The translations under genes were made by a program, and so were the position numbers. From positions 65,096,397 through 65,160,396 of the forward strand of contig NC_068990.1 of assembly GCF_001194135.2 (NCBI RefSeq): 64,000 nucleotides of DNA. Direction: 5' to 3'. Positions 7,301 through 31,322 of this stretch are shown one piece after another. The DNA comes from Octopus bimaculoides (Eukaryota). The notes under the pieces were generated by a model. It had not been told where the DNA came from and made no database searches. It saw nothing but the letters and a program-made list of their open reading frames with translations. Position 1 is the first letter of the stretch; the number at the start of each line of letters is the position of its first letter.

Positions 7301-10300
7301 CTTGAAATGAAAAATAGATTTATATTGTTTGTTAAAATATGTTGTCCAATAAATTTATATTGTTCATACTACTTTGAAAAATGTGAATAACAGAGCCTCA
7401 CATTTTCCATTTCCTGAAATATTTCAGACTTTAACTTGTATAAGAAGAAGAAGAAGAAATAATAGTAGTAGTTGTTGTTGTTGCTGCTGCTGTTGTTGTT
7501 GTTGTTGTTCAAGCAGTTAATATTTTGGCACACCAGCTGCACCAAGAAACAGCTTCAAAATTCATCAGCAGCATTATTAGCAACAACAACATTTAGATGC
7601 ATGCAAGAATCATTGCTTATCATTATACTTAGCTTCAAATCACAAAGATCTTGCAACCAACCTTTCCAAACTATGCACAAGCACTTTGCTCATTCCTTCT
7701 TCCCCAGAAATGCCACTTCCTGTGTTTCCTTCCTCACCCGCATTTTTCCTGCAAGCATTGAACTACAGATGTTTAAATGGGTACATCAACTGTATCAATT
7801 TCAGCACTCTGGGAGAACTTGCAAATGTCATAGTTACTGCACCCCACCGCCTTTGAGTTACTTACAAAGAAAACACAGGAAAAAAAAAAAAAGAAAAATG
7901 CCAAAACATCTCAGCAGCCCTCTTGTGCAGTCTCTTTCTCATCTGATTCAGAAATATATGCAACACTAACAGTATTAATTGCCATACTAGCCTCTTGTTA
8001 CTAGCTTCTTCCAAATTACCTTTACTGAAAATGTCAATGTACTGAATATTAAAGTTGCACTTAATAAATATCTCTAGCTTATCTCTCCTGCTATTATCAA
8101 TAGGGTCTCTTATTAGGGATTAACATATCAAATATCACTATTATCCACAATCTCAAAAATACTTCAGTAGTTAATTGTGACACCCAACAACAACCAGACA
8201 AGAAAAGAAAGAAAAAAAAGTATTTTATAAGCCCTTGAGCTCATATTTATTGAGGAAGGAAAATGTAACTGTAAACACTCATGCATATCCTCTCCATCAC
8301 AGCCCATGTTTTACTGCCATGTAACATAGCCATTTGTACACAGGCATCATGCCATCTGCATTTCACTTTAAGAGAGAAGCCCTTTGTTTCTAACAAAAGT
8401 AACAGCACTCTGAACTTTGTCCAGTCAGTTCTTATTCTAGTAACTAGGCTTTCAGTGTATCCTCCTCCTCTACTTATTTGGTCACCTAGGTAACAGAAAC
8501 CATCTACTACGTCTAAGGATCTCCTTAGGCATTTGAGGAAATCTATTTCCTGTGTATTCTTAATGATTATTGTATTTGCGCATCTGCAACACACCAAGAC
8601 TACTTCTTCTGTTAACCTTCCTGTAATTTTACTGCACCTCTTATGTGTCCATAGCTTGCACTGGATACATCATATGGAATTTCTACCTCCTGCACCTTTT
8701 CTACATATTGAACTGGGCCATTTTCTCAAAGGAGTTGGTAATTTGTCTGCTTTTCTGTTATCTAGTATTTTGGCCATTGCTAAATTAAGTCTAAGGCCCT
8801 TTGATTCTGCTATTTGTTTCCACACCTGAAATTTCTTCTCTAATTCTTCTAGAGATTCAGCTATAAGATCAAGGTCATTGGTAGAGGAGTTTTCATGGGC
8901 AACGAGTTTTAAAATTCTTCTGTTATGGCCGGGAGTACTATGATAAACAAGATGGATCTGGGAATCAATCCTTGGTGAATTAGTGCACACTAATTTCATT
9001 GCTATACTCATTGCTGATATTCACCACCAGCTACTGATCTACCTCCTAGCTTCTACATCAACCACTAGACGAGTGAGTAAGGGTTCCTGTCAAAGGCTTT
9101 CTCCATATCAACAAATGCCAAGTATGAAGTTTTATTTTTGGCTAAATGCTACTTTTTCATTTAGATACAGGAAGATAACATCAGTAGTGCTTCTTCCTGG
9201 AGGAAAATCAATCTATCATACATCTCATCTAAGTTAACTCACTTCCTAATTAGTTGAGCTATGACCCTTTCTAGAACTTTCATGTCCTGGTCCAGCAATA
9301 TGACACCTCTGTAATTATTTCTGACTAAGGTATCACCTTCACCTTTGTAGAAGTTGACAATAATGTTGCTATACCTCTCATTGAGCATGACACCTTCCTG
9401 GACAATCAGATTATTTATACAGGTGACTAGGACATATCTCACTTCACCAGGTATTTTAAGCATTTCAGCAGTAATTCCTGATAGGCCAGGGGCCTTCCCT
9501 ATCTTCATATCTCTAATTGCTTTGTCTATGAAGCAGCTGTCAGCTCAGATAGGTGATCTCTCTGTTGGGTTCACATTAGGAAGACTCCTTTTCCTATGTA
9601 TTCTCTACATTTGGCAGCCTTTTGCAATGGCATTTCTTTACAAAATCACTAAATGCAAGTATACCATCATCCATCTGAACACACAGCTTCACAGCTTTCT
9701 CTGAACTTTGCTATTCAGAACACCTCAAACCTCTTGACTTCATGCCACAGAACATTAGCAAAATTTTTCCATTCTGTTTCTCCCTTAGCTAAATATAACT
9801 TTCCTGGCTTCTCTTCTGACATAGTTCCTTGCTGTCTCCTCTCTTCCAGACCCTCCAGGTTTGTTTCTCTGCTTTTATGGCCCTCTCTGCTTCATTGTTC
9901 CGCCACCATGTCACCCTAGGTCTGGTTGAGATTTTGTACCTACCACAAATTTGGCCTGTAGCCCTCAGTAAGCTATCTTGTTGGAACTTCCAGTCATCCT
10001 CTATGTTACAAATCTGTAACTCCTCCCGCTTCTCATCAAATGCTTCAATTAGAACATCTCTAAATCTCTGGCTATTCAAAGGACCCTTAGACCCTTAAGC
10101 TTTCAAATCTTTCTTTTCCAGATTTGGTTTGCTTCTTCTTGAAGTTCTTTTAACCCACAGTCTGAAGTTGCTAATGACTAAACTACATTGAAGAATACAT
10201 TCTTCTCCAGGGATGGTCCTTATGAGTAACCATCCATCCTGTTTTCTAGTGAGAATGTAGTCAATCTAGCTGTGTAGCCACTAGATAGATAGGAGGTCAG

Positions 10301-13300
10301 GTGACTGGCTGGTTTTCTGAAGTTAGTATTACAAATCATTAGGTCATTTTCATCACAAAGCTTCAATAGCCTTGTTCACTCCTCATTACAGGAACCAACT
10401 CCATAGCCTCCACACACACTTTGGAAGCCACCTGGATTCTGCCCAACATACCCATTGAAGTCACCAACCATGAAGATAAGGTTTCTGTCATTTGTCATCA
10501 AGGTAGTCTGAAAAACTGTATCATAAAAATCAATCTTGTTGTTCATCTGGCAGTTGGTTGAGGAACTTAGGTTGAAATAATAGTTGTTTTACTTTACAAA
10601 ATTAGCCTAAGCATAAGTACCCTGTTGCACACTTTGAATACCTTGATCATCTTAATCACCCAATTCTCATTATACCATTTTGAAACATTATTATATATAT
10701 TAGATTTAAGCAGTTAACCTTACAGGTGATTGTTTTCATCGTGTATTAACATGAACTAACATCTGCCTCATTCTTTCCCCTCTTAATGTATCTCATCCAC
10801 CAAATACTGAACTAAACATTTGGCTCAAATTCATTCTCTAAACACATTTTTTCCTATTTGTATGATTCTACAGAAATGCAAGCTGGGCATTGATTCTCAC
10901 CAGTTTTGCAGACCTGCAAATGTCATGGATACCATGTCTTCTCTGAGAAAACAAAATCACTATATGTATATACATAGATATCTGTGTGTGTGATCATCTT
11001 TTAACACTCGCTTTCCATGCTGGAACACACACACACACACACATACACACACCTACTTTATTTTCTTTCTGTAATAGGTAGACATTTTGTTGTGACTGTT
11101 TCTTTATGCCATTTGTTACATGGCTACAGAAAAGCCCAAAAGACTTTTTTTCTCAGTAAGTTTTGGTAATTATAACAAACATTTCCTTTGTAGCCACGTA
11201 AAGCTCACCTTGTGTTGCAAGATGGAAGCTATTACCAAGGATATTCATTCGGCCATGAAAGTTCTTGCAGTGGAGAAGTTGTATTCAATACAGGTCTTGT
11301 GGGGTAAGTTTTCCTGTCTTTTTTTCCCATGAATTTAGTTGAGTGTCCCTTCCAACTATTAAAAACTCTAGAGTGAAGTAAGAATGGAACCCAATATTTT
11401 ATCAGTTGTTAAAGCAATCATGTGATTCATCAGAAGCACAACAGTAAGTTGACTTCCAATAAGATTTACACTTACAGACATATTATTAGTGGTCTTGCAT
11501 CATAACAGCACTGCACTGTGCTTCAAGTATTATTGTGATTTTATGATCATCAATGCAACAACACCTCTTCAAAACATCTAGAAACTAGAATATACAGTAT
11601 GTCTTTTCAGTTTTTAAGACTACATGTGATATGAGGGATATGTGCATTTACTTTTAGATGCTATGGCAATGTAAAATATACTGCTGTAGTCATTAGAAAC
11701 ATTGTCTAATAGGATAAGTGAATTGAGATAAATTTCAGTGCATCAGAAAAAATATCTTGCAGTATTTAGTCATGCCTTTGTATGTTATGTGAGTTCAAAT
11801 CTTGTCAGATTTGACTGGTTAGCTGATACTCTTGTAGTGTGTATGTATGTTTAGAAATGCTGCATGTATCTTTTTAGAAGAATTCTCACAGAGAAGAAAA
11901 ATAAATTTAGGAACTATATATTTATTACATAAAATATATTTTATTCCCTGGTTGTTGATGAAACATAATCAAAATGTAGAAACTAATTGAATGAAATAAT
12001 CTATGCAAGAAAGTTCAGAAATGTAGAAATAACAGCTAAATAGTGGTTTTTAGTAATGTAGCATGGAGAAATAGATAGACATGGCAATGACGTGAATGGC
12101 TCTGAGTCTAATCAACAAAGAAGCAAAGAGTAGGACAAGCAAACTGTTTTTATTAATGAAACACTAGACATTCTAGAAACTTCCAAGAGAAACGCGAAGC
12201 TTCTTGAATAATTAAGAATTGCTTCTCATGAAATATCTTCCAAGAAACTTACTAACGGGAGATTACTCTATAACACTTCTTGCAAGATTATATCATTCAA
12301 CTATTTTAGCTACAGATGACAAACTACTACACCCTTTTGCCCCAGCTAGTTATGCTGGGCTTTTTTTTCCCCAACTTTTTTTGAAAAGTGCTAAGTTTTT
12401 ACAGGAGACAGATAGAATTTTTAGATTTGCAATACTTTGTCACTATAAGAATCAAACATTTAAAATTTCTTTTAAATATTCTTTTAAATATTATTATTAT
12501 GCAGCCCCGATCAGCAACAATTGGGATTGCATAACAACCATAACAACAAAATAAACTACTACTACTAACTGTTTTTACCTTTTTCTTTTCTTTTTATTTA
12601 TTACATATTTTATTTATTCTCCTTCTCTCTCACTCACTTTCTCTCATTTCAATTTGCTCCAGATATCCTGAAGCCCTTTCAGACCCAAGTTATCGAGGAC
12701 AGATATTGACATTGACATATCCAATTGTTGGCAATTATGGAGTCCCAGACACCAATATTAAGGATGAGCATGGACTAATGTTGAATGTTGAATCTGATCG
12801 CATCCATGTTAGTTATATTTCCTTCATCTGTTAGGATTTAGTATTTATATGATGAAGTCACACTGGTACCACAGGATTAAGGTTTTGGGTTACTGTATTT
12901 GTGATCTTAGTTTCTGATATACTGGGCGTATGATATAAATTTCTAATGTTTTGAGATTGTGGTCTATGGAATGTCAGTTTTGTGCTATTTTTTTCTCTCT
13001 TGCTAAATAGTGTTTTCAGTACATGTAAAAAAAAAAAAATTATTTCTGTGTTATTCATTGCAACTTGTATCTGCAGTTCTGCATCAATCATCAGCTGGAA
13101 CCATTTCACTTCTTAAGAAAGACATGAACTTATAACTTCCTCTTTCCACTGACTTTTAAAAATCTCGAGATTACATATTTTGTATGGTGAATGCTCTAAC
13201 ACCATATAATAATTCAACCAAATTTTTCCAAGTAGGATAAGATAAAACAGGAGTCAATAATGGAAACAATGAATGATGTCTATTTACTGATCAATTCAAA

Positions 13301-20700: not shown

Positions 20701-23700
20701 CACATATATATATATGACGGGCTTCTTTCAGTTTCCGTCTACCAAATCCACTCACAGGGCTTTGGTCGGCCCGAGGCTATAGTAGAAGACACTTGCCCAA
20801 GGTGCCACGTAGTGGGACTGAACCTGGAACTATGTGGTTTGTAAGCAAGCCACTCCTCTTTAACTTATGGAATAAATTTGTTTTCTTTTCAACACCAAAC
20901 ATTCATTTGTATGTTTTGATTATTTTGTGTTATTTTTGTTGCATTTTAAATGTTTATTATGATTTGGGAGAGTTGTTAGAGCATTGAATAGAATACTTAA
21001 TGGTATTTGTTACAACTCTTTACATTCTGACTAAAAATCCTGCTCTGCTCAACTTTGCCTTTCATTCCTCAGGGGTCAATAAAATTAAGTACCAGTCAAA
21101 TACTAAGTTGATTTAGTCTACTTAACCCCACCCTTCAGACAATTACTGGTCTTCTTACCTAAATTAGAAACCATTATTAGTATTATTTTTTGTTATTAAG
21201 ATGGTGAGCTGGCAGAATTGTTAGCATGCGGAGCAAAATGCTTAGCAGCATTTCATCTGTCTTTATGCTCTGCATTCAAATTCTGCTGAAGTTGACTTTG
21301 CCATTCATCCTTTCAGTGTTGATAAAATAAGTACCAGTTACGCACTGAGGTTGGTCTAATTTATCTACCCCACCCCTAAAATTTCTGGCTTGTGCCAAAA
21401 CTTACAAGCAATATTATTATTGTTATTGTTTTTGTTATTATTGTTGATGATGATGCTGCTTTGTCAGTCATTGGGTATAATATTTCTCTGTAGTACATGA
21501 CTGACCATGCAATTGACATTTTATGATATATTCTATCATATATTATATTTTGCAAGGAATTTTCAGCACTGCAGCAACTATTCCTGATGGTCCAGTTGTG
21601 CTCTTTGCTTCATATCCTTAACTGTCCTTTCAATCATGTGGCTGTCAACTTTAAGAGCTGGTTCCTCTGATAGGTCTCATTTGGGTAGACTTTCTCTCCT
21701 TCAAATATTCTCTTTATTCCACAATCTCTTGAAGTAAAATACACAAACCTTTTTCTTCTCATTGTCAATGAAAGCAGTATCAATTAGCAGACACAGCTGC
21801 CCTAAAAATAGTTGGTAGCTTTTGTTACCTAGGTGACTTGTTCAGTTGTGGAGACAGATGTTCTAAAAGTATAGTAACCAGAATAATCACTCCTGCTGGC
21901 AACAAGGAGATAGGTTGTATGATACTTGTGCATGAAATTTTAGCTGAGTGGCATTTCTTATGTTTCAAATAATTTCTATTTTGATTCCATAGTCAGTAAC
22001 CAATAATCACTGAAATTGGTAAATAAAGAAATACATGTTGGTGTGCTACTACAAGTAGAGATTAATATTTTGTGCTGGATGGCAAGCTGGTAGAATCATT
22101 AGCATGCCCAGCTAAGCACTTGACAGCATTTCATCCATCTTTACGTTCTGAGTTCAAATTCCGATGGGGTTGACTTTGCCTTTCATCCTGAGGGGTCAAT
22201 AAAATAAGTTACCAGTTGAGCACTGGGGTCGATGTAATCAACTTACCCATTCCCTGAAATTGCTGGCCTTCTGCCAAAAAGTTTCAAACCAATATTTGGA
22301 GCTGGGTCCTTCATCTAAACCTCACTCTCTCATTCTCTCTTTCTCTCTCACTTTTTCTTTCAGTCATTCATGCACTGTACCTTTTTTATAATTTTGTTGT
22401 TTCATTTGTTTTATTTTCTTTTTTTTTTTTTGTTTTGTATCTCTCAGTGGCCATAACCAACCTGTTGTGAATGTTCTAACTAACCAGGCATTTATCACAT
22501 CACAGAACCATGGCTTTGCCATTGATAGTAGTTCTCTGCCAGAAGACTGGAATGTTTTGTTTGTCAATGCCAATGACAAAACTAATGAGGTTAGTTTAAT
22601 AAATGAAAAATCCAATCTAAACAACTAATGAACTATAAAAAGAATTTTCATGAGGACAGAGACACACAACAGGGTGGACAAGTGACTCTAATAGTTAAGC
22701 CTGTATCCTATAATCTTGTGTGTTTTGTGAGACATGACTTTAATCCTTTTTGCCATGTAATGTGTTTAGAAAAGGTAGCATGGTGGAACAAGTTTTTCTC
22801 AAACTAAAACTCATGTGAAAATTTGAACCACACATTACAAGATAATGAAAAACTTGCCAGTTATGTTAAAAGTTGAGTGTTTTTACATGAAGACAAAATA
22901 TTGCTTATAATAGGGGTTGAAGGGTTGACTTTTTCCATCATTGGTCTACTTTCTATGAGTTGCCCTAATATGACTCTCTTACTGATATTGATGATTCATA
23001 AATACATTTTGGTCCATTTAATCTCATGTCAAGTGTGATATTGGTGAAATATCAAACTAATATCATGGTGATGTTATCACACTACAAATATCACACACTA
23101 TATATATNNNNNNNNNNNNNNNNNNNNNNNNNNNNNNNNNNNNNNNNNNNNNNNNNNNNNNNNNNNNNNNNNNNNNNNNNNNNNNNNNNNNNNNNNNNNN
23201 NNNNNNNNNNNNNNNNNNNNNNNNATATATATATATATATATAAACACGTGTATGTATATACGTGTGTGTGTGTATGTGTGTGTGTGCATGTAAATATAT
23301 ATGTGTGTACACATACATTTATGTACATGTATGTACGTATTCATACATATATGTGTGTGTGTGTTTATATGTATTTTGATACGCACAGACACACTCATTG
23401 AGTTCCTTGCCTTCACTTGTTAGGTCTCCATCTACTTTTTTATTTTCTCTATTCATTTCCATCTCATTCTCTATCCTTTCAGTATACCACATTGCTTGCA
23501 TAACCAAAGGAGGATTACTAAGGCTGCCCCATATCCAGTAACCATTTCTATCACCTACCACCACAAACCATCATCCTCCCCTCCCTTGTGATTTTTTTGT
23601 TGATATTTACTACTCTTGCCATTACGATTTCTGTTGCTATTCTGTCAAGCCGCCCATGTTGTTCTTCTATTCCACTTCCTTACCAATCACTAGCATGTAG

Positions 23701-26700
23701 CTATTACTCTCTCTTTTTTCTTATCTCTCCCACCTCCTGCCTTCTCTTTGTTCTTCTTTTCACACTTTCAATCCTGTACATCAGAAACTCTCTAAAGTAA
23801 AAAGGGCCCCTTAGTCCAGTAGTTCTCAACCAATTTTTGCCTACGGATCCCTTTTGATTTCTATTTTCTTTGGATGGACTGATATAGCCATTCAATGTTT
23901 AAAAATCATATTATACTTTTATAATTAAATATTAATAAGAAATTGTATTAAAAAATTGTTAAAATATTTTTATGTATTGTAGAAGTATAAATAATTTATT
24001 GCACATAAATTTTAACAACAAAATCTTATATGGACCTCCACGGGCCATACGGACTCTAGTTGAGAAACATTGTCTTTGTCTCATAGGGTTGCAAGACAAC
24101 TTACCATAAAAGCCCATGTAATTTATGCACATTTTTTGCAAAAATAAAAATAAACTTTAGGGTGTGTGTAAATTACATGAGTAGATCGTTTCCAGAATTT
24201 TTCTTGTTGAAAAAACATACAAAACGTAAACATTCATACTGGAAGTTAACTCATTTAATGTCAGAATAGGTTTTTACAGAAAAAAAATAATGGCTTAAAT
24301 ATAATGAAGCTGACTTTTATTTATGCTGGATGGTATAATGCTTACTTTTTCTGTATAAATTTACTAAAGCCGTTAAATGTTTAACTCCTTTTTGAAGTCT
24401 GACGTCCATGCTGTTAAACACGGTCCAGGACATATTTTACATTGCTTGAAATTTCTACCTATCGCAGTAGAGCACCATTGATATACCTAGTGATACAGAT
24501 ATTCCTGACTGTAAAAAATTTAATGACATGGATAATCTTGATTGTATGTAACATATGGTATAATTATAAACAAGGCAAATTTTTAGCCATTTCTCCGCAG
24601 ACTGTAAAAAAAAAGATGAACAGCCTTAATCGATTTTCGAACTTTATTGTATTCTCATCAGAAGCATCTACATCATTCTGACAGTCTCCAGAGAAACAAG
24701 CAGCCAAACTGTTTATATACTCAACAAATGCAGCAGTTACTCTATGAAGGAGTCCCTAATTTGCATACCGAAAGTGTTTAACACTCCATAAATTCCAGTG
24801 GCTTGTCAAAGGGGATCTTAGTCTGTACAGTATCAAGATATGATATAATATACATGTAACATATGGTATAATTATAAACAGGGCCAATTTTTAGCCATTT
24901 CTCTGCTGACTGAAAAAAATGATGAACAACCTTAATCAATTTTCAAACCTTATTGGGTTCTCATCAGAGGTGTCTACATCATTCTGACAGTCTCCAGAGA
25001 AACAAGCAGCCAAACTGTTTATATACTCAGCAAATGCAGCAGTTACTCTATGAAGGAGTCCCTAATTTGCATACCAAAAGTGTTTTTATTTTTGTCTGTT
25101 TATTACAAGGTGCAGTTTTAAGTTTGTTGTACTATTTACGCCAATTTCAAACATTGGCGTTATTAACATTAAAATGCCTTCCAGCAGCTCTATTGCCACA
25201 TTCAAATGTATATTCAGCATATTTAATTTCTCCTTCGCAGTAAACAATTCATAAGTTCTGCCCGTACTGACAATAATGGTAATGACGAATTTTAAAGTTT
25301 GCTTGACATTTTATAAGTGTGGAAGGGATTAAAATTTCAATACTCCATATCAAAGGTTCCGACAAGAATAGACAGAAAAGAATTTTGTTTACACAATCAG
25401 TTTGATCAGTCACCTTTCTCTGTCGGTTGAGTAAAGTGTCATCCAAGCTGATGTTTATTTGCTAATTAAACTTAATTTGCAACACCTGTGTGTATTTATC
25501 AACTCTGTGTTTGTTGGTAATTCTTATCAATAACTTTTCCTGTGATCGTGATTCGAGAAGACATACAGCAGTATGCTAAAGATAGGACATAATCTCTTGT
25601 GGGCAGGAAAGGTAAAATAAAGTTTATTATAAACAACACAATTGTAATTTAATAGCTTTCAATGTGATACGTGTTAGACAGAAATTATTTTTATTTAATG
25701 AAAATTTAATAAAATTTAATCATAAGTAAGTGAAATTTTGCTAAATACAACTAAATTGAAAACCTTTTTCCCTGGCCATATCAGCAATTCTGAAAACTTG
25801 TGGGTGCAGATTTTACATGAGTAAAAGCTTTTTAACAAATTTTATCCTGTGTAATTTACGCAAGTGATTTTCAAGATAAAATCTGCAGGGGTCAGTGATA
25901 GGAAGGACATCCAGCCATAGAAACTATGCAAAATATGGAATGAACATGTAAGTTGTTGACCTCTGACCCATCTAGGAGAACAGTAACTTTAAATAAGAAC
26001 TGACTTGGACTGTGATAACTCTAACTCATGCCAGCAAAAAAAAGCAAAGACATAAATATTGATAATGATAATAATGTGTACACATAAGCATATATCCATC
26101 TTTCAGGGTTTCAGTTTGTGTTGCTTCCTACTAGAAATGACATAACAAACACCAATTACATATAGAGAACAATTAAAACATTTCTAATTTTTGATCTTGT
26201 GCAAATGTTAGAAATTATTTTCCTTACTCTTCATCATCCTCCTCATACTCCTTCACCCCATCATCATCATTATCATCATCATCATCATCATCATCATCAT
26301 TATTATAACTATTATTCTTTCAGGGTATTATGCACAAATCACGTCCTATATTTACGGCCCAGTTCCATCCTGAAGCTTGGGGAGGTCCAACAGATACAGA
26401 GGTAATTTTTGCTTTGTTGTTCCTTGCTTCATTATTTTAAGATCTGCAGCTGGTAGCAACACTTCATAATGGCTTCTATTTTATAGTTTTCGAATTGTGA
26501 ATTTTGTCTGGCATTTTGTCTTCCACTGATCATAACCATTTCTTTTTTTTTTTTTGTTACAATGGCTTCTACCTAATTTTTCTGACTTAAAATTTTGTTA
26601 TCAGTAACTTAACATATTCACAACATTCACTGGTAATAGTCCTGTGAACTATATATAATAGAACAAAGCAGGTAAATGAAAGTTTATTTGTTTGTTATGT

Positions 26701-29700
26701 TCATCAGTGACCATAAATATTTCATTGGTTCATGCATATGTTAGATGAATGTGTTATTGATGAGCTGTATTACAACCAGATGCCCTTCATGTTGCTAACC
26801 CTTGTCTGCTTTTCAAATAAGGGTTTGTCTTCAAAGATGCAAAGTGAGTAGACAGAGATGACAACAATAACATGGCTTGTAGCTTTTGATGTTTCTAGAG
26901 CACAAATGTATAAAAAAAAATACACACGCTCATATACGCACACTCTCGCACATGCATACAAATGATAGACTTCTTTCAGTTTCTGTCTACCAAATAATAC
27001 TTTGTTTGGAAACAGAAGATTGCTGGTGACAGGAAGGGCTTCCTGGCTGTAGAAAAATCTGCCTCAACAAGTCCTTTCTGACCCATGCAAGCTTGGAAAA
27101 GTAGATATTTAACTCTTTTGAGACACATGGTGTTTTGCTATGTGTAACTAAAAAGACGAAAATTTTTTTCCTATTGAGATACATCTACTGAAAGACAATC
27201 TCTGATTAGCTATTACACTTCAAAACCAACCATTCACAACATTTGTTCCATTGGGTTGACAGATCAGCCTCAAAGTCCTTTCAGTTTGTATCACTTGGAT
27301 CAACCAATTGGCCTGGGTGTCCCAAGAGGATTTAAATAGTGATGATGATTATGATGATGGTGATAATGACACCAGTACTGTTCATCTGTGACCATGACCT
27401 TCAATTTAATAAAGACCACATCATTTACTCATTGATCTGCACTTGCTAAAGTAAACATATATTTAATTAACTTGGCAATTTGTTATAAGTTGAAGTGTGA
27501 AGGATTTGGAAAAGCAGTAACGTGTTTGTTTGAAACTTTGTTTCATATTGGAAGAAAGTTTTGGGGTGAATTGTCTGAACTGTATACCATGTCTCAAATA
27601 GTACTATGTTTCAAATCAAGAACATCATCTTTGAGATCATTCTGAATCTGGATGGTTCCCATGACAATAAATAACAATTACTTTGCTCAAGTGCATGTTG
27701 TGATCCATATAAACCATTGTCTGACTGTCTGTAAAGTTTCTGAAGATGCAAGCATCTGTAAGAGGTTGTGCCACATAACTTTAAAAGAAAAAATGACGAA
27801 AAAAACGTTGATTTGTCACAAGATTTGGACCTCTTATGCTAAGAGATGACCAAATAGAGAACCAAAGTGACAGTCATCCAGATGTGACTGTACAGATGTT
27901 TATGAAAACTTTCTGAGAAGTGTCACAGCATGTGATGATGAAACATGAATGTAGAGCTGTGGGGTTGAAAGAGAAACATAGTTGTCAGTTGGGGTCAGTT
28001 TATCTTTGCTGAAAAAAAAAGCCGGTCACTCAAATGTGAAGGTAATGTTGCACATGTTTTTGATTGGAAGGGCTGTGTCCATTATGAGTTTGTTCCGCAT
28101 CAATGATGATGATAATCTTTAAATTTTAATTTCAGTTCCTATTCGACTATTTCCTTGAACTTGTCAAAACTCAGCAGCCCTCTGTGTACCATATTTTGAA
28201 ACCAGCACCTAAAGTTCAACCTCTTGTAAAGGTATGTAAAATCATTCACACATCAAAGTATTTAGTAAGGATAATGTGAACACAAGCAGTGATGTTGACT
28301 ATCCTCTTTGAATCCAACTCTACACAGTGCAAAAATCGAAAGTTTGTAGCTTTTGGGGGGAGTGACTAGATGCCACTCTAAACCCCACCCATGTTCTCTT
28401 GATAACCACTCATCTTACACACCATCCCATAACCACCCCACTCAAACTCAAAAAATGGCCTCTCGCTATCACACTATCTCACAACAAGACATCTTGAAAT
28501 GCCTCCATTTTCGCTTTATCCAACTCCACACCCCAACATAAAATCTATCTTTTTCCATCCATATCAGACTTGCCACCCTGTACACATGCATGCCATTTAC
28601 AAAAGCACTGCTAATCACTTTCAACTCAACAGGACTATTAGCCTGACATTATTCGGTCCCTCCAATCCTGCCAACTATTATCCTATCACACTTACTTCCA
28701 ACATCTGAAAGTGAAGTAGACAACAATTAACAACAATCTTTTCCAACCTCTTAAGTTTCTCTCTCCCACTTTAGTGGTTTTTATAAAGTCAGATCTACTG
28801 GAGACATGTTCTTCTTTGTAATTCACTAGTAGGTCATTGCCCTCAAAAATTTGGTGAGAGCAAAATCATTGCACTTGACATCAGCTTGTTCTTGTCAGTT
28901 TACATTTGTTTTTTTTTGTATTTGATTACAAATTTCAGTGATGGCTACAACCAATACTTTACATCTTGCATTCCAAATTATTAGATGAACTGATTTAGTG
29001 AATTCCTTATATATAGTAATAAGCTATATTTACCTCATTTCTGATGCAGTCCCAATTGGAACAGAAACCAGTAAGGTCAATCTTTTTTGTGGCCATGGAG
29101 AGATAAAAAAGAAGAAAAATACAGTATTTGTATTTGTGTGTTCAATTGCATATTACAGCCAATAGCTTAAACTAGTTAGTTGTACCTTACTTTACATTTC
29201 AGATTTTTCGTTGCACAATGTTTAGGTCTGTCATGTGCCCTTGGATTCATAAGGGCAGAGCTTAATCTGGATTCCCTGGCAGATGAAACTGAGATTACAA
29301 CACTCCCCATGAATAGGATGCCAGTCCATTATAGTAGTAATTTCCCAGCTATTGCGGAAACTCATGTATAGCTGAGTGGACTGGAGCAATGTGAAATGAA
29401 GTATTTTGCTCAAGAACACAACACACTACCCAGTCCAGGAATTGAAACCCCAATTTTATGATCATTAGCGCAACACCCTAACCATTAGGCTATGTGCATT
29501 TTTACAATGTTTAGTGCCTCATTGATTAATATTATTATAATCATTTTGCCAAATACAGAAGACATGTTTATTTTATTTATCACTCTCAAATATTTTTATT
29601 TTTACTTCAAACATTTTATTTTTATATATTCAGGTCAAAAAAGTACTTGTATTGGGCAGTGGTGGACTGTCTATTGGTCAAGCTGGAGAGTTTGATTATA

Positions 29701-31322
29701 GTGGTTCTCAAGCTGTGAAGGCTCTAAAGGTAAGAAAACATTACACTAAACCCATAATCTCTTCAATCGTACATTTTTATATTTTTATGGTTTTGTCCGA
29801 AGAGGAAAGGCAGAGCCTACAATCTTCTTCACAGCTTCCCAAACAGGTGGGACAAAGGGTAGAAAATAGCCTCAGACTTGACATTTCATGCAGGTGCTTG
29901 TAGCCAAATGGACTCTGCTCTTTAGTCAGGTGCTAGTGTTAAACCTTGCACTGTATCACACCTACCACATAGTGTATAGTTGTTTGCAGTGAATTGTATG
30001 ACACCTGACCCATGACAATATGGAAGAATAGAATGAGATATGGAAAGCTGAGTCCTCCCAAAATTATTTAAATTGTTTCCAACTCACACAAAGGGGGTTA
30101 AGAGTTGTGTCCGTTTGGTCCATTTGAAAAGATGCGGTTAATTTTATTAGGAAAGTCTAGTTTGTAAGACCGTATCCAGAGAGGGTAGTGTTCTCCTGTT
30201 CAATAACAGAAACTTGTTGAGATGCTTGCATCTTGTGAAAATTTCTGATCTTAGTAAGTTTTTGGATTTGGAAAGGATATGCAAGACTTCCATTTTTTCT
30301 GTCCTTCAATACTACTCCCTACCTCAGTTGAGGGGGTCTTGTCTTGCAGGTTACTTGGTTGTCTCATTGCTGCTGTTGCCACTTTAAAATCACCCAGTGC
30401 ATTCTGAAAGTTGTTGACATTAGGAGGGGCATCCAGCCATAGAAACCATGTTAATGCAGACAGCCAGGCTTGGTGTCTGCCGAACTATTCAACCAATGTT
30501 AGCATGGAAAACAGATGTTAAATGATTATAATAATGATGATGATGATATTGGATGTCGGTATGCACATACCTGTACGTATATATGCATATACTCATTTAC
30601 TATTGTTTTCACCAATTTGTAAGTAGTTATCGTAACTTTATATTTTCCTACGCTACTCTATCTCTTTCTCTTTCTCTTCCTCTATCATTTTTCCCCCTCT
30701 CGTTCTTCCTCTTTACTACTACGTATCTCGCTTTACTCCTCTCGTTCTTCCTCTGTTACTACTACGTATCTCTTTTTCCCCCCTCGTACTTCCTCTCTTT
30801 CTCTTTTCCTCTCGTTGCTCACCTATTCTTCTACTTCCTCCCTTTGTTTCTCCCTCTACCACTCTCTCTCTTCCCCTTACACTGGCATGGTCACATGCTT
30901 CCGGTCAATAATCCTTTTCTTCCTTGGCTATCGCCGAGCAAACACGCGAACTNNNNNNNNNNNNNNNNNNNNNNNNNNNNNNNNNNNNNNNNNNNNNNNN
31001 NNNNNNNNNNNNNNNNNNNNNNNNNNNNNNNNNNNNNNNNNNNNNNNNNNNNNNNNNNNNNNNNNNNNNNNNNNNNNNNNNNNNNNNNNNNNNNNNNCCA
31101 TGGGAAGAGCCGTTTTAACGATGCGTCCTGCCCAGCTCTTCGAAACACCGGTGTTAAAACGGGGGTAGCTGATGAAGAAGAATGTTCTCTATGTGGCTTG
31201 TGTGTTTTCTCGTCTAGGTTTTGTTTGCAATGTCCTGTACCCAGATATGCACCTATACATACAGGTGGATGTCGGTATACACATACCTGTACGTATATAT
31301 GCATATACCCATTTACTATTTG

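Follow-up and report, generated by a model that had tools for sequence, protein, structure and literature searches.

A probable hammerhead retrozyme repeat of 306-nt period, antisense within an intron of Octopus bimaculoides

Non-LTR retrozymes are repeats of 150–450 bp that carry a type I hammerhead, have a GC content below 50% and possess neither long terminal repeats (LTRs) nor primer binding sites nor polypurine tracts; retrozyme-like repeats are known from cnidarians to amphibians, molluscs included (PMC7229834). In a published survey they were recognised as tandems detected by Tandem Repeats Finder (TRF), with at least two consecutive units that each hold a complete type I hammerhead with a minimum free energy (MFE) below -5 kcal/mol (bioRxiv 10.64898/2026.07.22.740005). 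The canonical metazoan hammerhead of this type has a helix II of 4 bp, a helix III of 1–2 bp closed by a palindromic loop of 2–4 nt, and a helix I of about 6 bp, with helices I and II interacting through conserved loop nucleotides (PMC4209133); it is weakly active alone, and active as a dimer in tandem repeats (PMC4209133; PMC6155905; axolotl data in PMC7229834). No report of retrozyme-like repeats in cephalopods was found in the searchable literature. Here, a repeat array is described from a 64,000-nt stretch of the Octopus bimaculoides genome (assembly GCF_001194135.2, contig NC_068990.1, positions 65,096,397 to 65,160,396 of the forward strand), referred to below as the window and numbered from its first letter. 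The array lies on the minus strand at 25085–24546, in antisense orientation within an intron, and is probably an insertion of 1.76 units of an AT-rich, non-coding hammerhead satellite or non-LTR retrozyme with a period of 306 nt. It would extend hammerhead-bearing repeats (retrozymes) to the cephalopods and supply a concrete candidate for a 306-nt, ribozyme-made circular RNA, while leaving knowledge of how such elements work unchanged.

The array consisted of two direct copies of one segment around a single-copy stretch, that is, in an A-B-A arrangement delimited by repeat finding, alignment and blastn. The upstream copy was a partial unit of 232 nt containing hammerhead 1 (25085–24854), and the downstream copy, containing hammerhead 2, was 234 nt long (24779–24546) and retained four CpGs and a palindromic loop III; identity between the two was 92.3% over 234 nt. 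Segment B, the single-copy 74 nt of the 306-nt period (24853–24780), did not align significantly with either of the array's flanks, and neither flank continued the homology of the repeat. The idea that segment B continues beyond the downstream copy was dropped, no significant similarity having been found there. The start-to-start spacing of the direct repeats was 306/308 nt. Thus, where the preliminary description of this locus spoke of a tandem 306-nt unit, the period was upheld by the spacing and the full tandem was not, given an A-B-A layout of 1.76 units that TRF did not call.

Each copy contained a hammerhead motif of 60 nt, identified by descriptor and folding, in which the same elements followed one another: a 5' helix I strand (GAUGUAGA-NNNNU), CUGAUGA, the helix II hairpin, GAAA, AUYGAU, UA, the cut, and AGGYUGUUCAUC. 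Hammerhead 1 (24980–24921) reads GAUGUAGACACCU-CUGAUGA-GAACC CAAUAA GGUUU-GAAA-AUUGAU-UA/AGGUUGUUCAUC, where the slash marks the predicted cut, and has a G-U pair at 10.1-11.1. Hammerhead 2 (24674–24615) reads GAUGUAGAUGCUU-CUGAUGA-GAAU(A) CAAUAA (A)GUUC-GAAA-AUCGAU-UA/AGGCUGUUCAUC, with G-C at 10.1-11.1 and the palindromic loop UCGA in helix III. The type I core was complete in both copies, comprising CUGAUGA, GAAA, the A15.1-U16.1 pair and an A (not G) at H17. From the reading of the motif, cleavage is predicted 3' of A17 at 24933 (24933/24932) in the first and 3' of A17 at 24627 (24627/24626) in the second, positions that are exactly 306 nt apart; these cuts, and the full core in both minus-strand units, had been proposed before and were confirmed directly on the sequence. 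An alternative register for U16.1 and H17 was rejected because it gave poorer helix I pairing.

The specificity of the motif was assessed with a descriptor specifying the full core, at least 4 bp in helix I, at least 4 in helix II, at least 2 in helix III and a UH cleavage site. On both strands of the window it matched these two sites only. It produced no match in 300 dinucleotide shuffles of the window, nor on either strand of 60 Mb of Markov-1 simulated sequence in three replicates, where a relaxed version matched nine times. The probability that the window contains such a match by chance is therefore low, well under 0.01. Such motifs are usually detected by descriptors in this field (PMC8557442; PMC4209133).

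Three helices surrounded the core in both copies: helix I had an open end, and a loop capped each of helices II and III; in the descriptor matches they measured 4, 4–5 and 2 bp, respectively. Pairing within helix cells reached 96.7%, against 20–57% when the partners were slid. Helix I comprised four proximal pairs, an internal loop, four to six distal pairs and a long, imperfect but conserved extension, so that the ribozyme capped a hairpin of about 105 nt in each copy: at 25002–24898 by folding for hammerhead 1 (arms 25002–24977 and 24924–24898) and at 24696–24590 for hammerhead 2 (arms 24696–24671 and 24618–24590). Helix II, of 4–5 bp, ended in a 6-nt loop CAAUAA in the upstream copy and in ACAAUAAA in the downstream copy (6–8 nt overall), and its closing pair 10.1-11.1 was G-C downstream and G-U upstream, where a CpG transition had turned TTCGAA into TTTGAA. 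Loop II and the internal loop of helix I were alike in both copies except at position 2.5 of the internal loop. The helix III segments, AAUUGAUU (24941–24934) and AAUCGAUU (24635–24628), were both palindromes of the type AAUYGAUU; each forms two A-U pairs, and the loop on these is UCGA in the downstream copy and, following a C-to-U transition at a CpG, UUGA in the upstream copy. The canonical helix III, of 1–2 bp with a palindromic loop, was thereby found as A-U, A-U and UCGA downstream and with UUGA upstream.

Judged by these features of sequence, both motifs are canonical metazoan type I hammerheads and not of the minimal Penelope type. The minimal hammerhead of Penelope-like elements has no loop III or one of up to 2 nt, a helix II of 7–8 bp, an extra base after A9 and a short helix I (PMC4209133), unlike the 4-nt loop III, 4–5-bp helix II and long helix I observed here, where no extra base stood between A9 and G10.1. 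The two share type I topology, dependence on dimers, arrangement in direct repeats and a palindromic 15.2-16.2 region (PMC4209133). However, the pseudo-LTRs (pLTRs) of Penelope-like elements flank an open reading frame (ORF) for reverse transcriptase (RT) and endonuclease (EN), and only 74 nt separate the copies here. A link to the minimal Penelope pLTR hammerhead, suggested in the preliminary description, was consequently abandoned. With a canonical metazoan type I hammerhead in each of its copies, the array was assigned to the known class of hammerhead satellites and non-LTR retrozymes; it looks like an ordinary copy of that class rather than a new kind of system.

This assignment was supported by comparison with the non-LTR retrozymes of coral, mussel and axolotl (Cervera & de la Pena 2020, PMC7229834), which likewise have a type I hammerhead in each repeat, a period between 150 and 450 bp (here 306 nt), low GC (here 35%, the defining limit being 45–50%), no ORF or LTR, and a monomer between two cut sites that is predicted to be well paired. 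No Pfam domain was found in six frames of the unit, although primer binding sites and polypurine tracts were not searched for. The array differed in comprising 1.76 units, as opposed to dimers to 62-mers, in its unusual UUA cleavage triplet and in its intronic antisense location. Closer resemblances in the ribozyme were seen with newt satellite 2 and the axolotl motifs HHR_Amex1-2 (PMC7229834; PMC6155905): helix III there too has 1–2 bp under a palindromic tetraloop and lengthens when two tandem copies pair, helix I has an extension that contains an internal loop, and the period is similar, at about 330–350 bp. The sequences are unrelated, however; helix III consists of A-U pairs only in the octopus array, and its copies are not identical, so that the heterodimer has a U-G in helix III and one A.C in helix I. 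The newt satellite 2 hammerheads are discussed further below, where dimer formation is considered.

Among other natural hammerheads, the canonical type I motifs in introns of the amniote genes RECK and CTCL (PMC6155905) share the intronic setting, but these are single, in sense orientation and deeply conserved, whereas the octopus array is duplicated and antisense. A further comparison concerns Schistosoma Sm-alpha, a hammerhead within an element resembling a short interspersed nuclear element (SINE). It differs from the array in that no tRNA-like promoter part was found in the latter. The structure of the Sm-alpha hammerhead has reportedly been determined (by Martick and Scott, in 2006). As a lead rather than a test, Sm-alpha resembles the present motifs in a helix I that starts with GAUGUA, in a 6-nt, A-rich loop II beginning with CAA, and in an internal loop or bulge in helix I at a similar distance from the core; it differs in having a G-C-rich helix II (GUCC/GGAC), a GUC triplet and fast cleavage as a monomer.

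The copies differed at 18 alignment positions: two in the 105 nt upstream of the ribozyme, nine in the 60-nt ribozyme itself and seven in the 69 nt downstream, and the difference in rate between ribozyme and upstream region was significant (Fisher p = 0.002). None of the nine ribozyme differences fell on the 13 core positions, leaving the core intact in both copies despite 15% divergence of the motif, and no pair common to both copies was broken. At pair 2.4-1.4 both sides had changed, from A-U to G-C or the reverse, and still paired, while three one-sided changes preserved pairing: C-G versus U-G at 2.2-1.2, C-G versus U-G at 10.4-11.4, and G-U (upstream) versus G-C (downstream) at 10.1-11.1. 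The remaining contrast, C-G versus A.A at 10.5-11.5, represents a distal helix II pair lost in the AAUCGAUU copy. All of these differences in helices I and II had been listed previously, and every one proved correct when the copies were compared position by position. When nine substitutions, eight of them transitions, were placed at random, a pattern so favourable to structure arose with p = 0.0005–0.009, the value varying with polarity and with the inclusion or omission of the fifth helix II pair. With two sequences only, standard covariation shuffles are powerless, and the structure was read from those same two sequences; the case for constraint on the fold during divergence of the units is, for these reasons, only suggestive.

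Several of the differences between copies represented CpG decay, the upstream copy having no CpG and the downstream copy four. The present copy of the element is probably old, in view of the 7.7% divergence between the repeats and of the loss, in the upstream copy, of its CpGs, its G10.1-C11.1 pair and the palindrome of its loop; as far as can be read from these changes, it may now cleave poorly. Differences were also distributed unevenly along the repeat: the 105 nt upstream of the ribozyme (24981–25085 versus 24675–24779) contained two, against 16 in the other 129 nt (Fisher p ~0.002). This block was 98% identical between copies, compared with 85–90% elsewhere, and the contrast remained significant with CpG sites set aside; it could be due to selection, gene conversion or chance.

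Sequences resembling promoter and terminator signals accompanied each ribozyme. An octamer ATGCAAAT (25072–25065) and a TATA-like TATATAAA (25025–25018) lay upstream of hammerhead 1, and exact copies of both (24766–24759 and 24719–24712) upstream of hammerhead 2, so that candidate promoters span 25072–25018 and 24766–24712 on the minus strand. In each case TATATAAA was situated 47 nt past the octamer and started about 45 nt before helix I. Over both strands of the window the octamer occurred five times and TATATAAA 16 times. Together they could form an internal promoter; newt satellite 2 is reported to use a promoter of the small nuclear RNA type. Runs of T were observed on the minus strand directly after the 3' strand of helix I, seven at 24913–24919 and nine at 24606–24614. 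These would act as RNA polymerase III terminators, though they also lie within the 3' arm of the long hairpin.

Newt satellite 2 hammerheads are said to cleave as dimers, a finding credited to Forster et al. in 1988, and the energetics of the octopus array favoured the same arrangement. A single active fold is disfavoured, because helix III alone consists of 2 bp of A-U. On a 386-nt transcript spanning both ribozymes, two single hammerheads with an enforced 2-bp helix III had a free energy of -74.6 kcal/mol, while the double hammerhead, in which helix III has 8 bp and the units swap strands of helix I, had -87.5 kcal/mol; the unconstrained MFE was -90.4 kcal/mol. The double form was therefore about 13 kcal/mol better than two singles and 2.9 kcal/mol above the MFE. 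Its intercopy helix III included one U-G among eight pairs (A-U, A-U, U-A, U-G, G-C, A-U, U-A, U-A). The preliminary description had held that helix III is too weak to fold alone, that the copies pair fully with one another and that the array is poised to form a double hammerhead, and the computed energies agree on each count. A 540-nt transcript was also more stable than its shuffles (z = -3.6). The 306-nt monomer between the two cuts (24932–24627), which had been put forward as the excised product and is indeed bracketed by the predicted sites, has 35% GC and a circular MFE of -70.4 kcal/mol when folded, with 61% of bases paired (z = -2.2).

In the double hammerhead, helix I is formed in trans, and the covariation did not transfer to it in full. 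The combination of the upstream 5' strand with the downstream 3' strand had an A.C mismatch at 2.4/1.4, precisely where the double change occurs, and the other combination had two wobble pairs. The double change thus argues for pairing in cis or for homodimers of identical units; its earlier description as a change that keeps pairing holds for helix I in cis and fails for the trans helix I of the double hammerhead.

By analogy with characterised retrozymes, the transcription, cleavage, circularisation and mobility of the element may be pictured as follows. A minus-strand transcript would cover both copies, starting at the octamer and TATA-like block present in each unit or arising by read-through. 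A lone hammerhead, with its 2-bp A-U helix III, would seldom adopt the active fold, but in a two-unit transcript the AAUYGAUU palindromes would pair into an 8-bp helix III, the helix I strands would be swapped, and the double hammerhead would cut after A24933 and A24627. The product would be a 306-nt RNA with 5'-OH and cyclic-phosphate ends, as in known retrozymes (PMC7229834), which a host tRNA-type (RtcB-type) ligase would be expected to circularise. A monomeric circle cannot form a double hammerhead, and would therefore remain intact and stable. RT supplied in trans, likely that of a Penelope-like element, could copy the circle into tandem DNA units, and tandem cDNA of arbitrary phase would explain a 1.76-mer. 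In this respect the locus offers a compact natural example of dimer-only design, with its weak 2-bp helix III, its palindromic loop and a preference of 13 kcal/mol that can be computed.

A number of results weigh against interpreting the array as a retrozyme, and these concern both the ribozyme and the repeat. With respect to the ribozyme, the catalytic fold of the single hammerheads was weak, at -5.9 and -1.7 kcal/mol under the nearest-neighbour model, the helices being A-U-rich. Their MFEs were -13.8 and -8.6 kcal/mol, and the MFE fold competes with the active one, the helix III segment being paired in it with the core's UGAU. UUA is an atypical cleavage triplet, given that nearly all natural hammerheads have GUC and a few GUA or AUA (PMC1636495); Rfam hammerhead models gave no match at the gathering score, nor at E<=10 on either 801 nt or 86 nt; and the A.C mismatch in the trans helix I belongs here also. 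With respect to the repeat, two complete hammerheads with MFEs below the published limit were present, but only 232–234 nt of the 306-nt period are duplicated, giving 1.76 units, and TRF did not call the array with the settings of the tool used or with the published parameters of the retrozyme pipeline. No target-site duplication of at least 6 nt was found around the array or either copy. A sensitive blastn search detected no third copy in the window, and a covariance model built from both ribozymes, applied to the 64 kb with filters off, recovered the two known sites only (next best E>0.5). Exact-pattern scans for the repeat gave no match in metagenome contigs (two patterns), viral contigs or prokaryote genomes, and a Pfam scan over 23600–26000 of the host intron showed no Penelope-like ORF. 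The three longest reading frames of the repeat, joined into a chimera and used as a protein query to catch spurious ORFs on other copies, also had no match, and no paper containing the array sequence was found in the searchable literature.

Four other explanations were considered. That the array is the remnant of an autonomous Penelope-like element, with the copies as pseudo-LTRs and an RT-EN interior deleted to 74 nt, is unlikely. The direct repeats that flank elements of this kind do contain type I hammerheads, and partial tandems of them are known in which the upstream copy is 5'-truncated (PMC8557442; PMC4209133); a relationship between animal retrozymes and pLTRs has been reported (bioRxiv 10.64898/2026.07.22.740005), and the A-B-A layout would fit a truncated unit followed by a full one. 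Yet there was no RT or GIY-YIG signal in 23600–26000 on either strand, neither an inverted truncated copy nor a microsatellite target lay nearby, and the ribozyme departs from the minimal type in its loop III, short helix II, lack of an extra base and long, looped helix I. There is similarly little probability that the array represents a dispersed element of SINE type, about 234 nt long with one hammerhead, comparable to Schistosoma Sm-alpha and present twice through local duplication or two insertions, in which case the 306-nt 'unit' and its excisable monomer would be accidents of the locus. Target-site duplications were missing at both copies, the repeat had no tRNA-like part (a tRNA-like SINE head was sought in it and not found), and neither copy ended in a tail of poly(A) or simple repeats; moreover, the shared orientation and identical end points are expected of a 1.76-mer, and a palindromic helix III is a feature of dimers. 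These observations must be set against the restriction of repetition to 232–234 nt around a single-copy 74-nt spacer, the failure of TRF to see a tandem, the promoter-like block and T-run in each copy, and the documented hammerheads of non-autonomous retrotransposons in S. mansoni (PMC6155905).

A more remote proposition is that each copy is a self-contained small-RNA gene, composed of promoter, hammerhead hairpin of about 80 nt and T7–T9 terminator, and selected rather than mobile; it is very improbable, though if true it would constitute a domesticated invertebrate hammerhead RNA gene, with a possible effect on the carbamoyl-phosphate synthase locus that hosts it. Several features conform to this proposition: ATGCAAAT and TATATAAA recur exactly in the two copies, helix I begins about 45 nt beyond the TATA and is immediately followed by a T-run, the promoter-like 105 nt show significantly higher identity (98% against 85–90%, Fisher p 0.002), and the divergence of the ribozyme preserves structure. 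However, the motifs were chosen post hoc in DNA of 65% A+T, no proximal sequence element is definable for this taxon, the T-run lies within the 3' arm of the hairpin and would truncate helix I, and the 98% block is explicable by gene conversion. Finally, the hammerheads might be fortuitous resemblances in a locally duplicated piece of intron. This was regarded as extremely improbable, despite the missing Rfam match, the weakness of the predicted helices and the fact that two copies are not independent observations: the descriptor had no match in 60 Mb of simulated sequence and 300 shuffles, 13/13 core positions were intact in both copies at 15% motif divergence, one pair was compensatory and no common pair was broken, and both the palindrome in helix III and the loop in the extended helix I agree with canonical animal hammerheads (PMC4209133). 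The hammerhead satellite or non-LTR retrozyme accordingly remains the preferred interpretation of the array.

The intron that houses the array belongs to a plus-strand gene for carbamoyl-phosphate synthase and was defined by exon and homology mapping at 22590–26322, between an exon ending at 22589 with a GT donor and the exon at 26324–26401. As the array is antisense to this gene, the host pre-mRNA carries only the complement of the ribozymes. Exons of the gene include 22455–22589, 26324–26401 and 29637–29729. In all, the gene extended over 12544–63920, with at least 14 exons across more than 50 kb, and encoded glutamine amidotransferase and carbamoyl-phosphate synthase (CPSase) domains; its best named relatives were proteins annotated as 'CPS [ammonia], mitochondrial-like' from fish and sea anemone, at 61–64% identity, and not CAD. 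The window as a whole is draft eukaryotic DNA of 34% GC with several N gaps, strong CpG depletion (observed/expected ratio 0.23) and many (CA)n/(TA)n microsatellites.

On the minus strand, a 38-residue relic resembling BrkDBD/HTH_psq (25221–25108; PF09607, E = 5.6e-4, scoring 20.2 bits where the cut-off is 23.4) lay immediately upstream of the array. The six-frame Pfam scan of 23600–26000 recovered nothing except this weak helix-turn-helix (HTH) relic: neither RT nor GIY-YIG was detected on either strand, in agreement with the earlier statement that no RT/EN ORF is attached, and no domain was found in the repeat. No DDE transposase domain was found near the relic. The neighbour had previously been called a pogo relic; an HTH relic is indeed present, but the pogo label is weakly supported by a BrkDBD/psq-like match of 38 residues that falls below the Pfam cut-off. 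The suggestion that the neighbouring HTH extends as a coding relic into the repeat was dropped, there being no Pfam match in the repeat.

Other mobile element relics were noted in the window. A Tc1/mariner-like transposase fragment, a further DNA-transposon relic, was observed in a plus-strand frame between about 24,300 and 41,000, not exactly located. A decayed long interspersed nuclear element (LINE) was identified on the minus strand at approximately 8200–11000, with endonuclease, RT and a C-terminal PHD-like CxxC motif; in a protein search, its only named relatives were two Octopus bimaculoides proteins with 46–58% identity.

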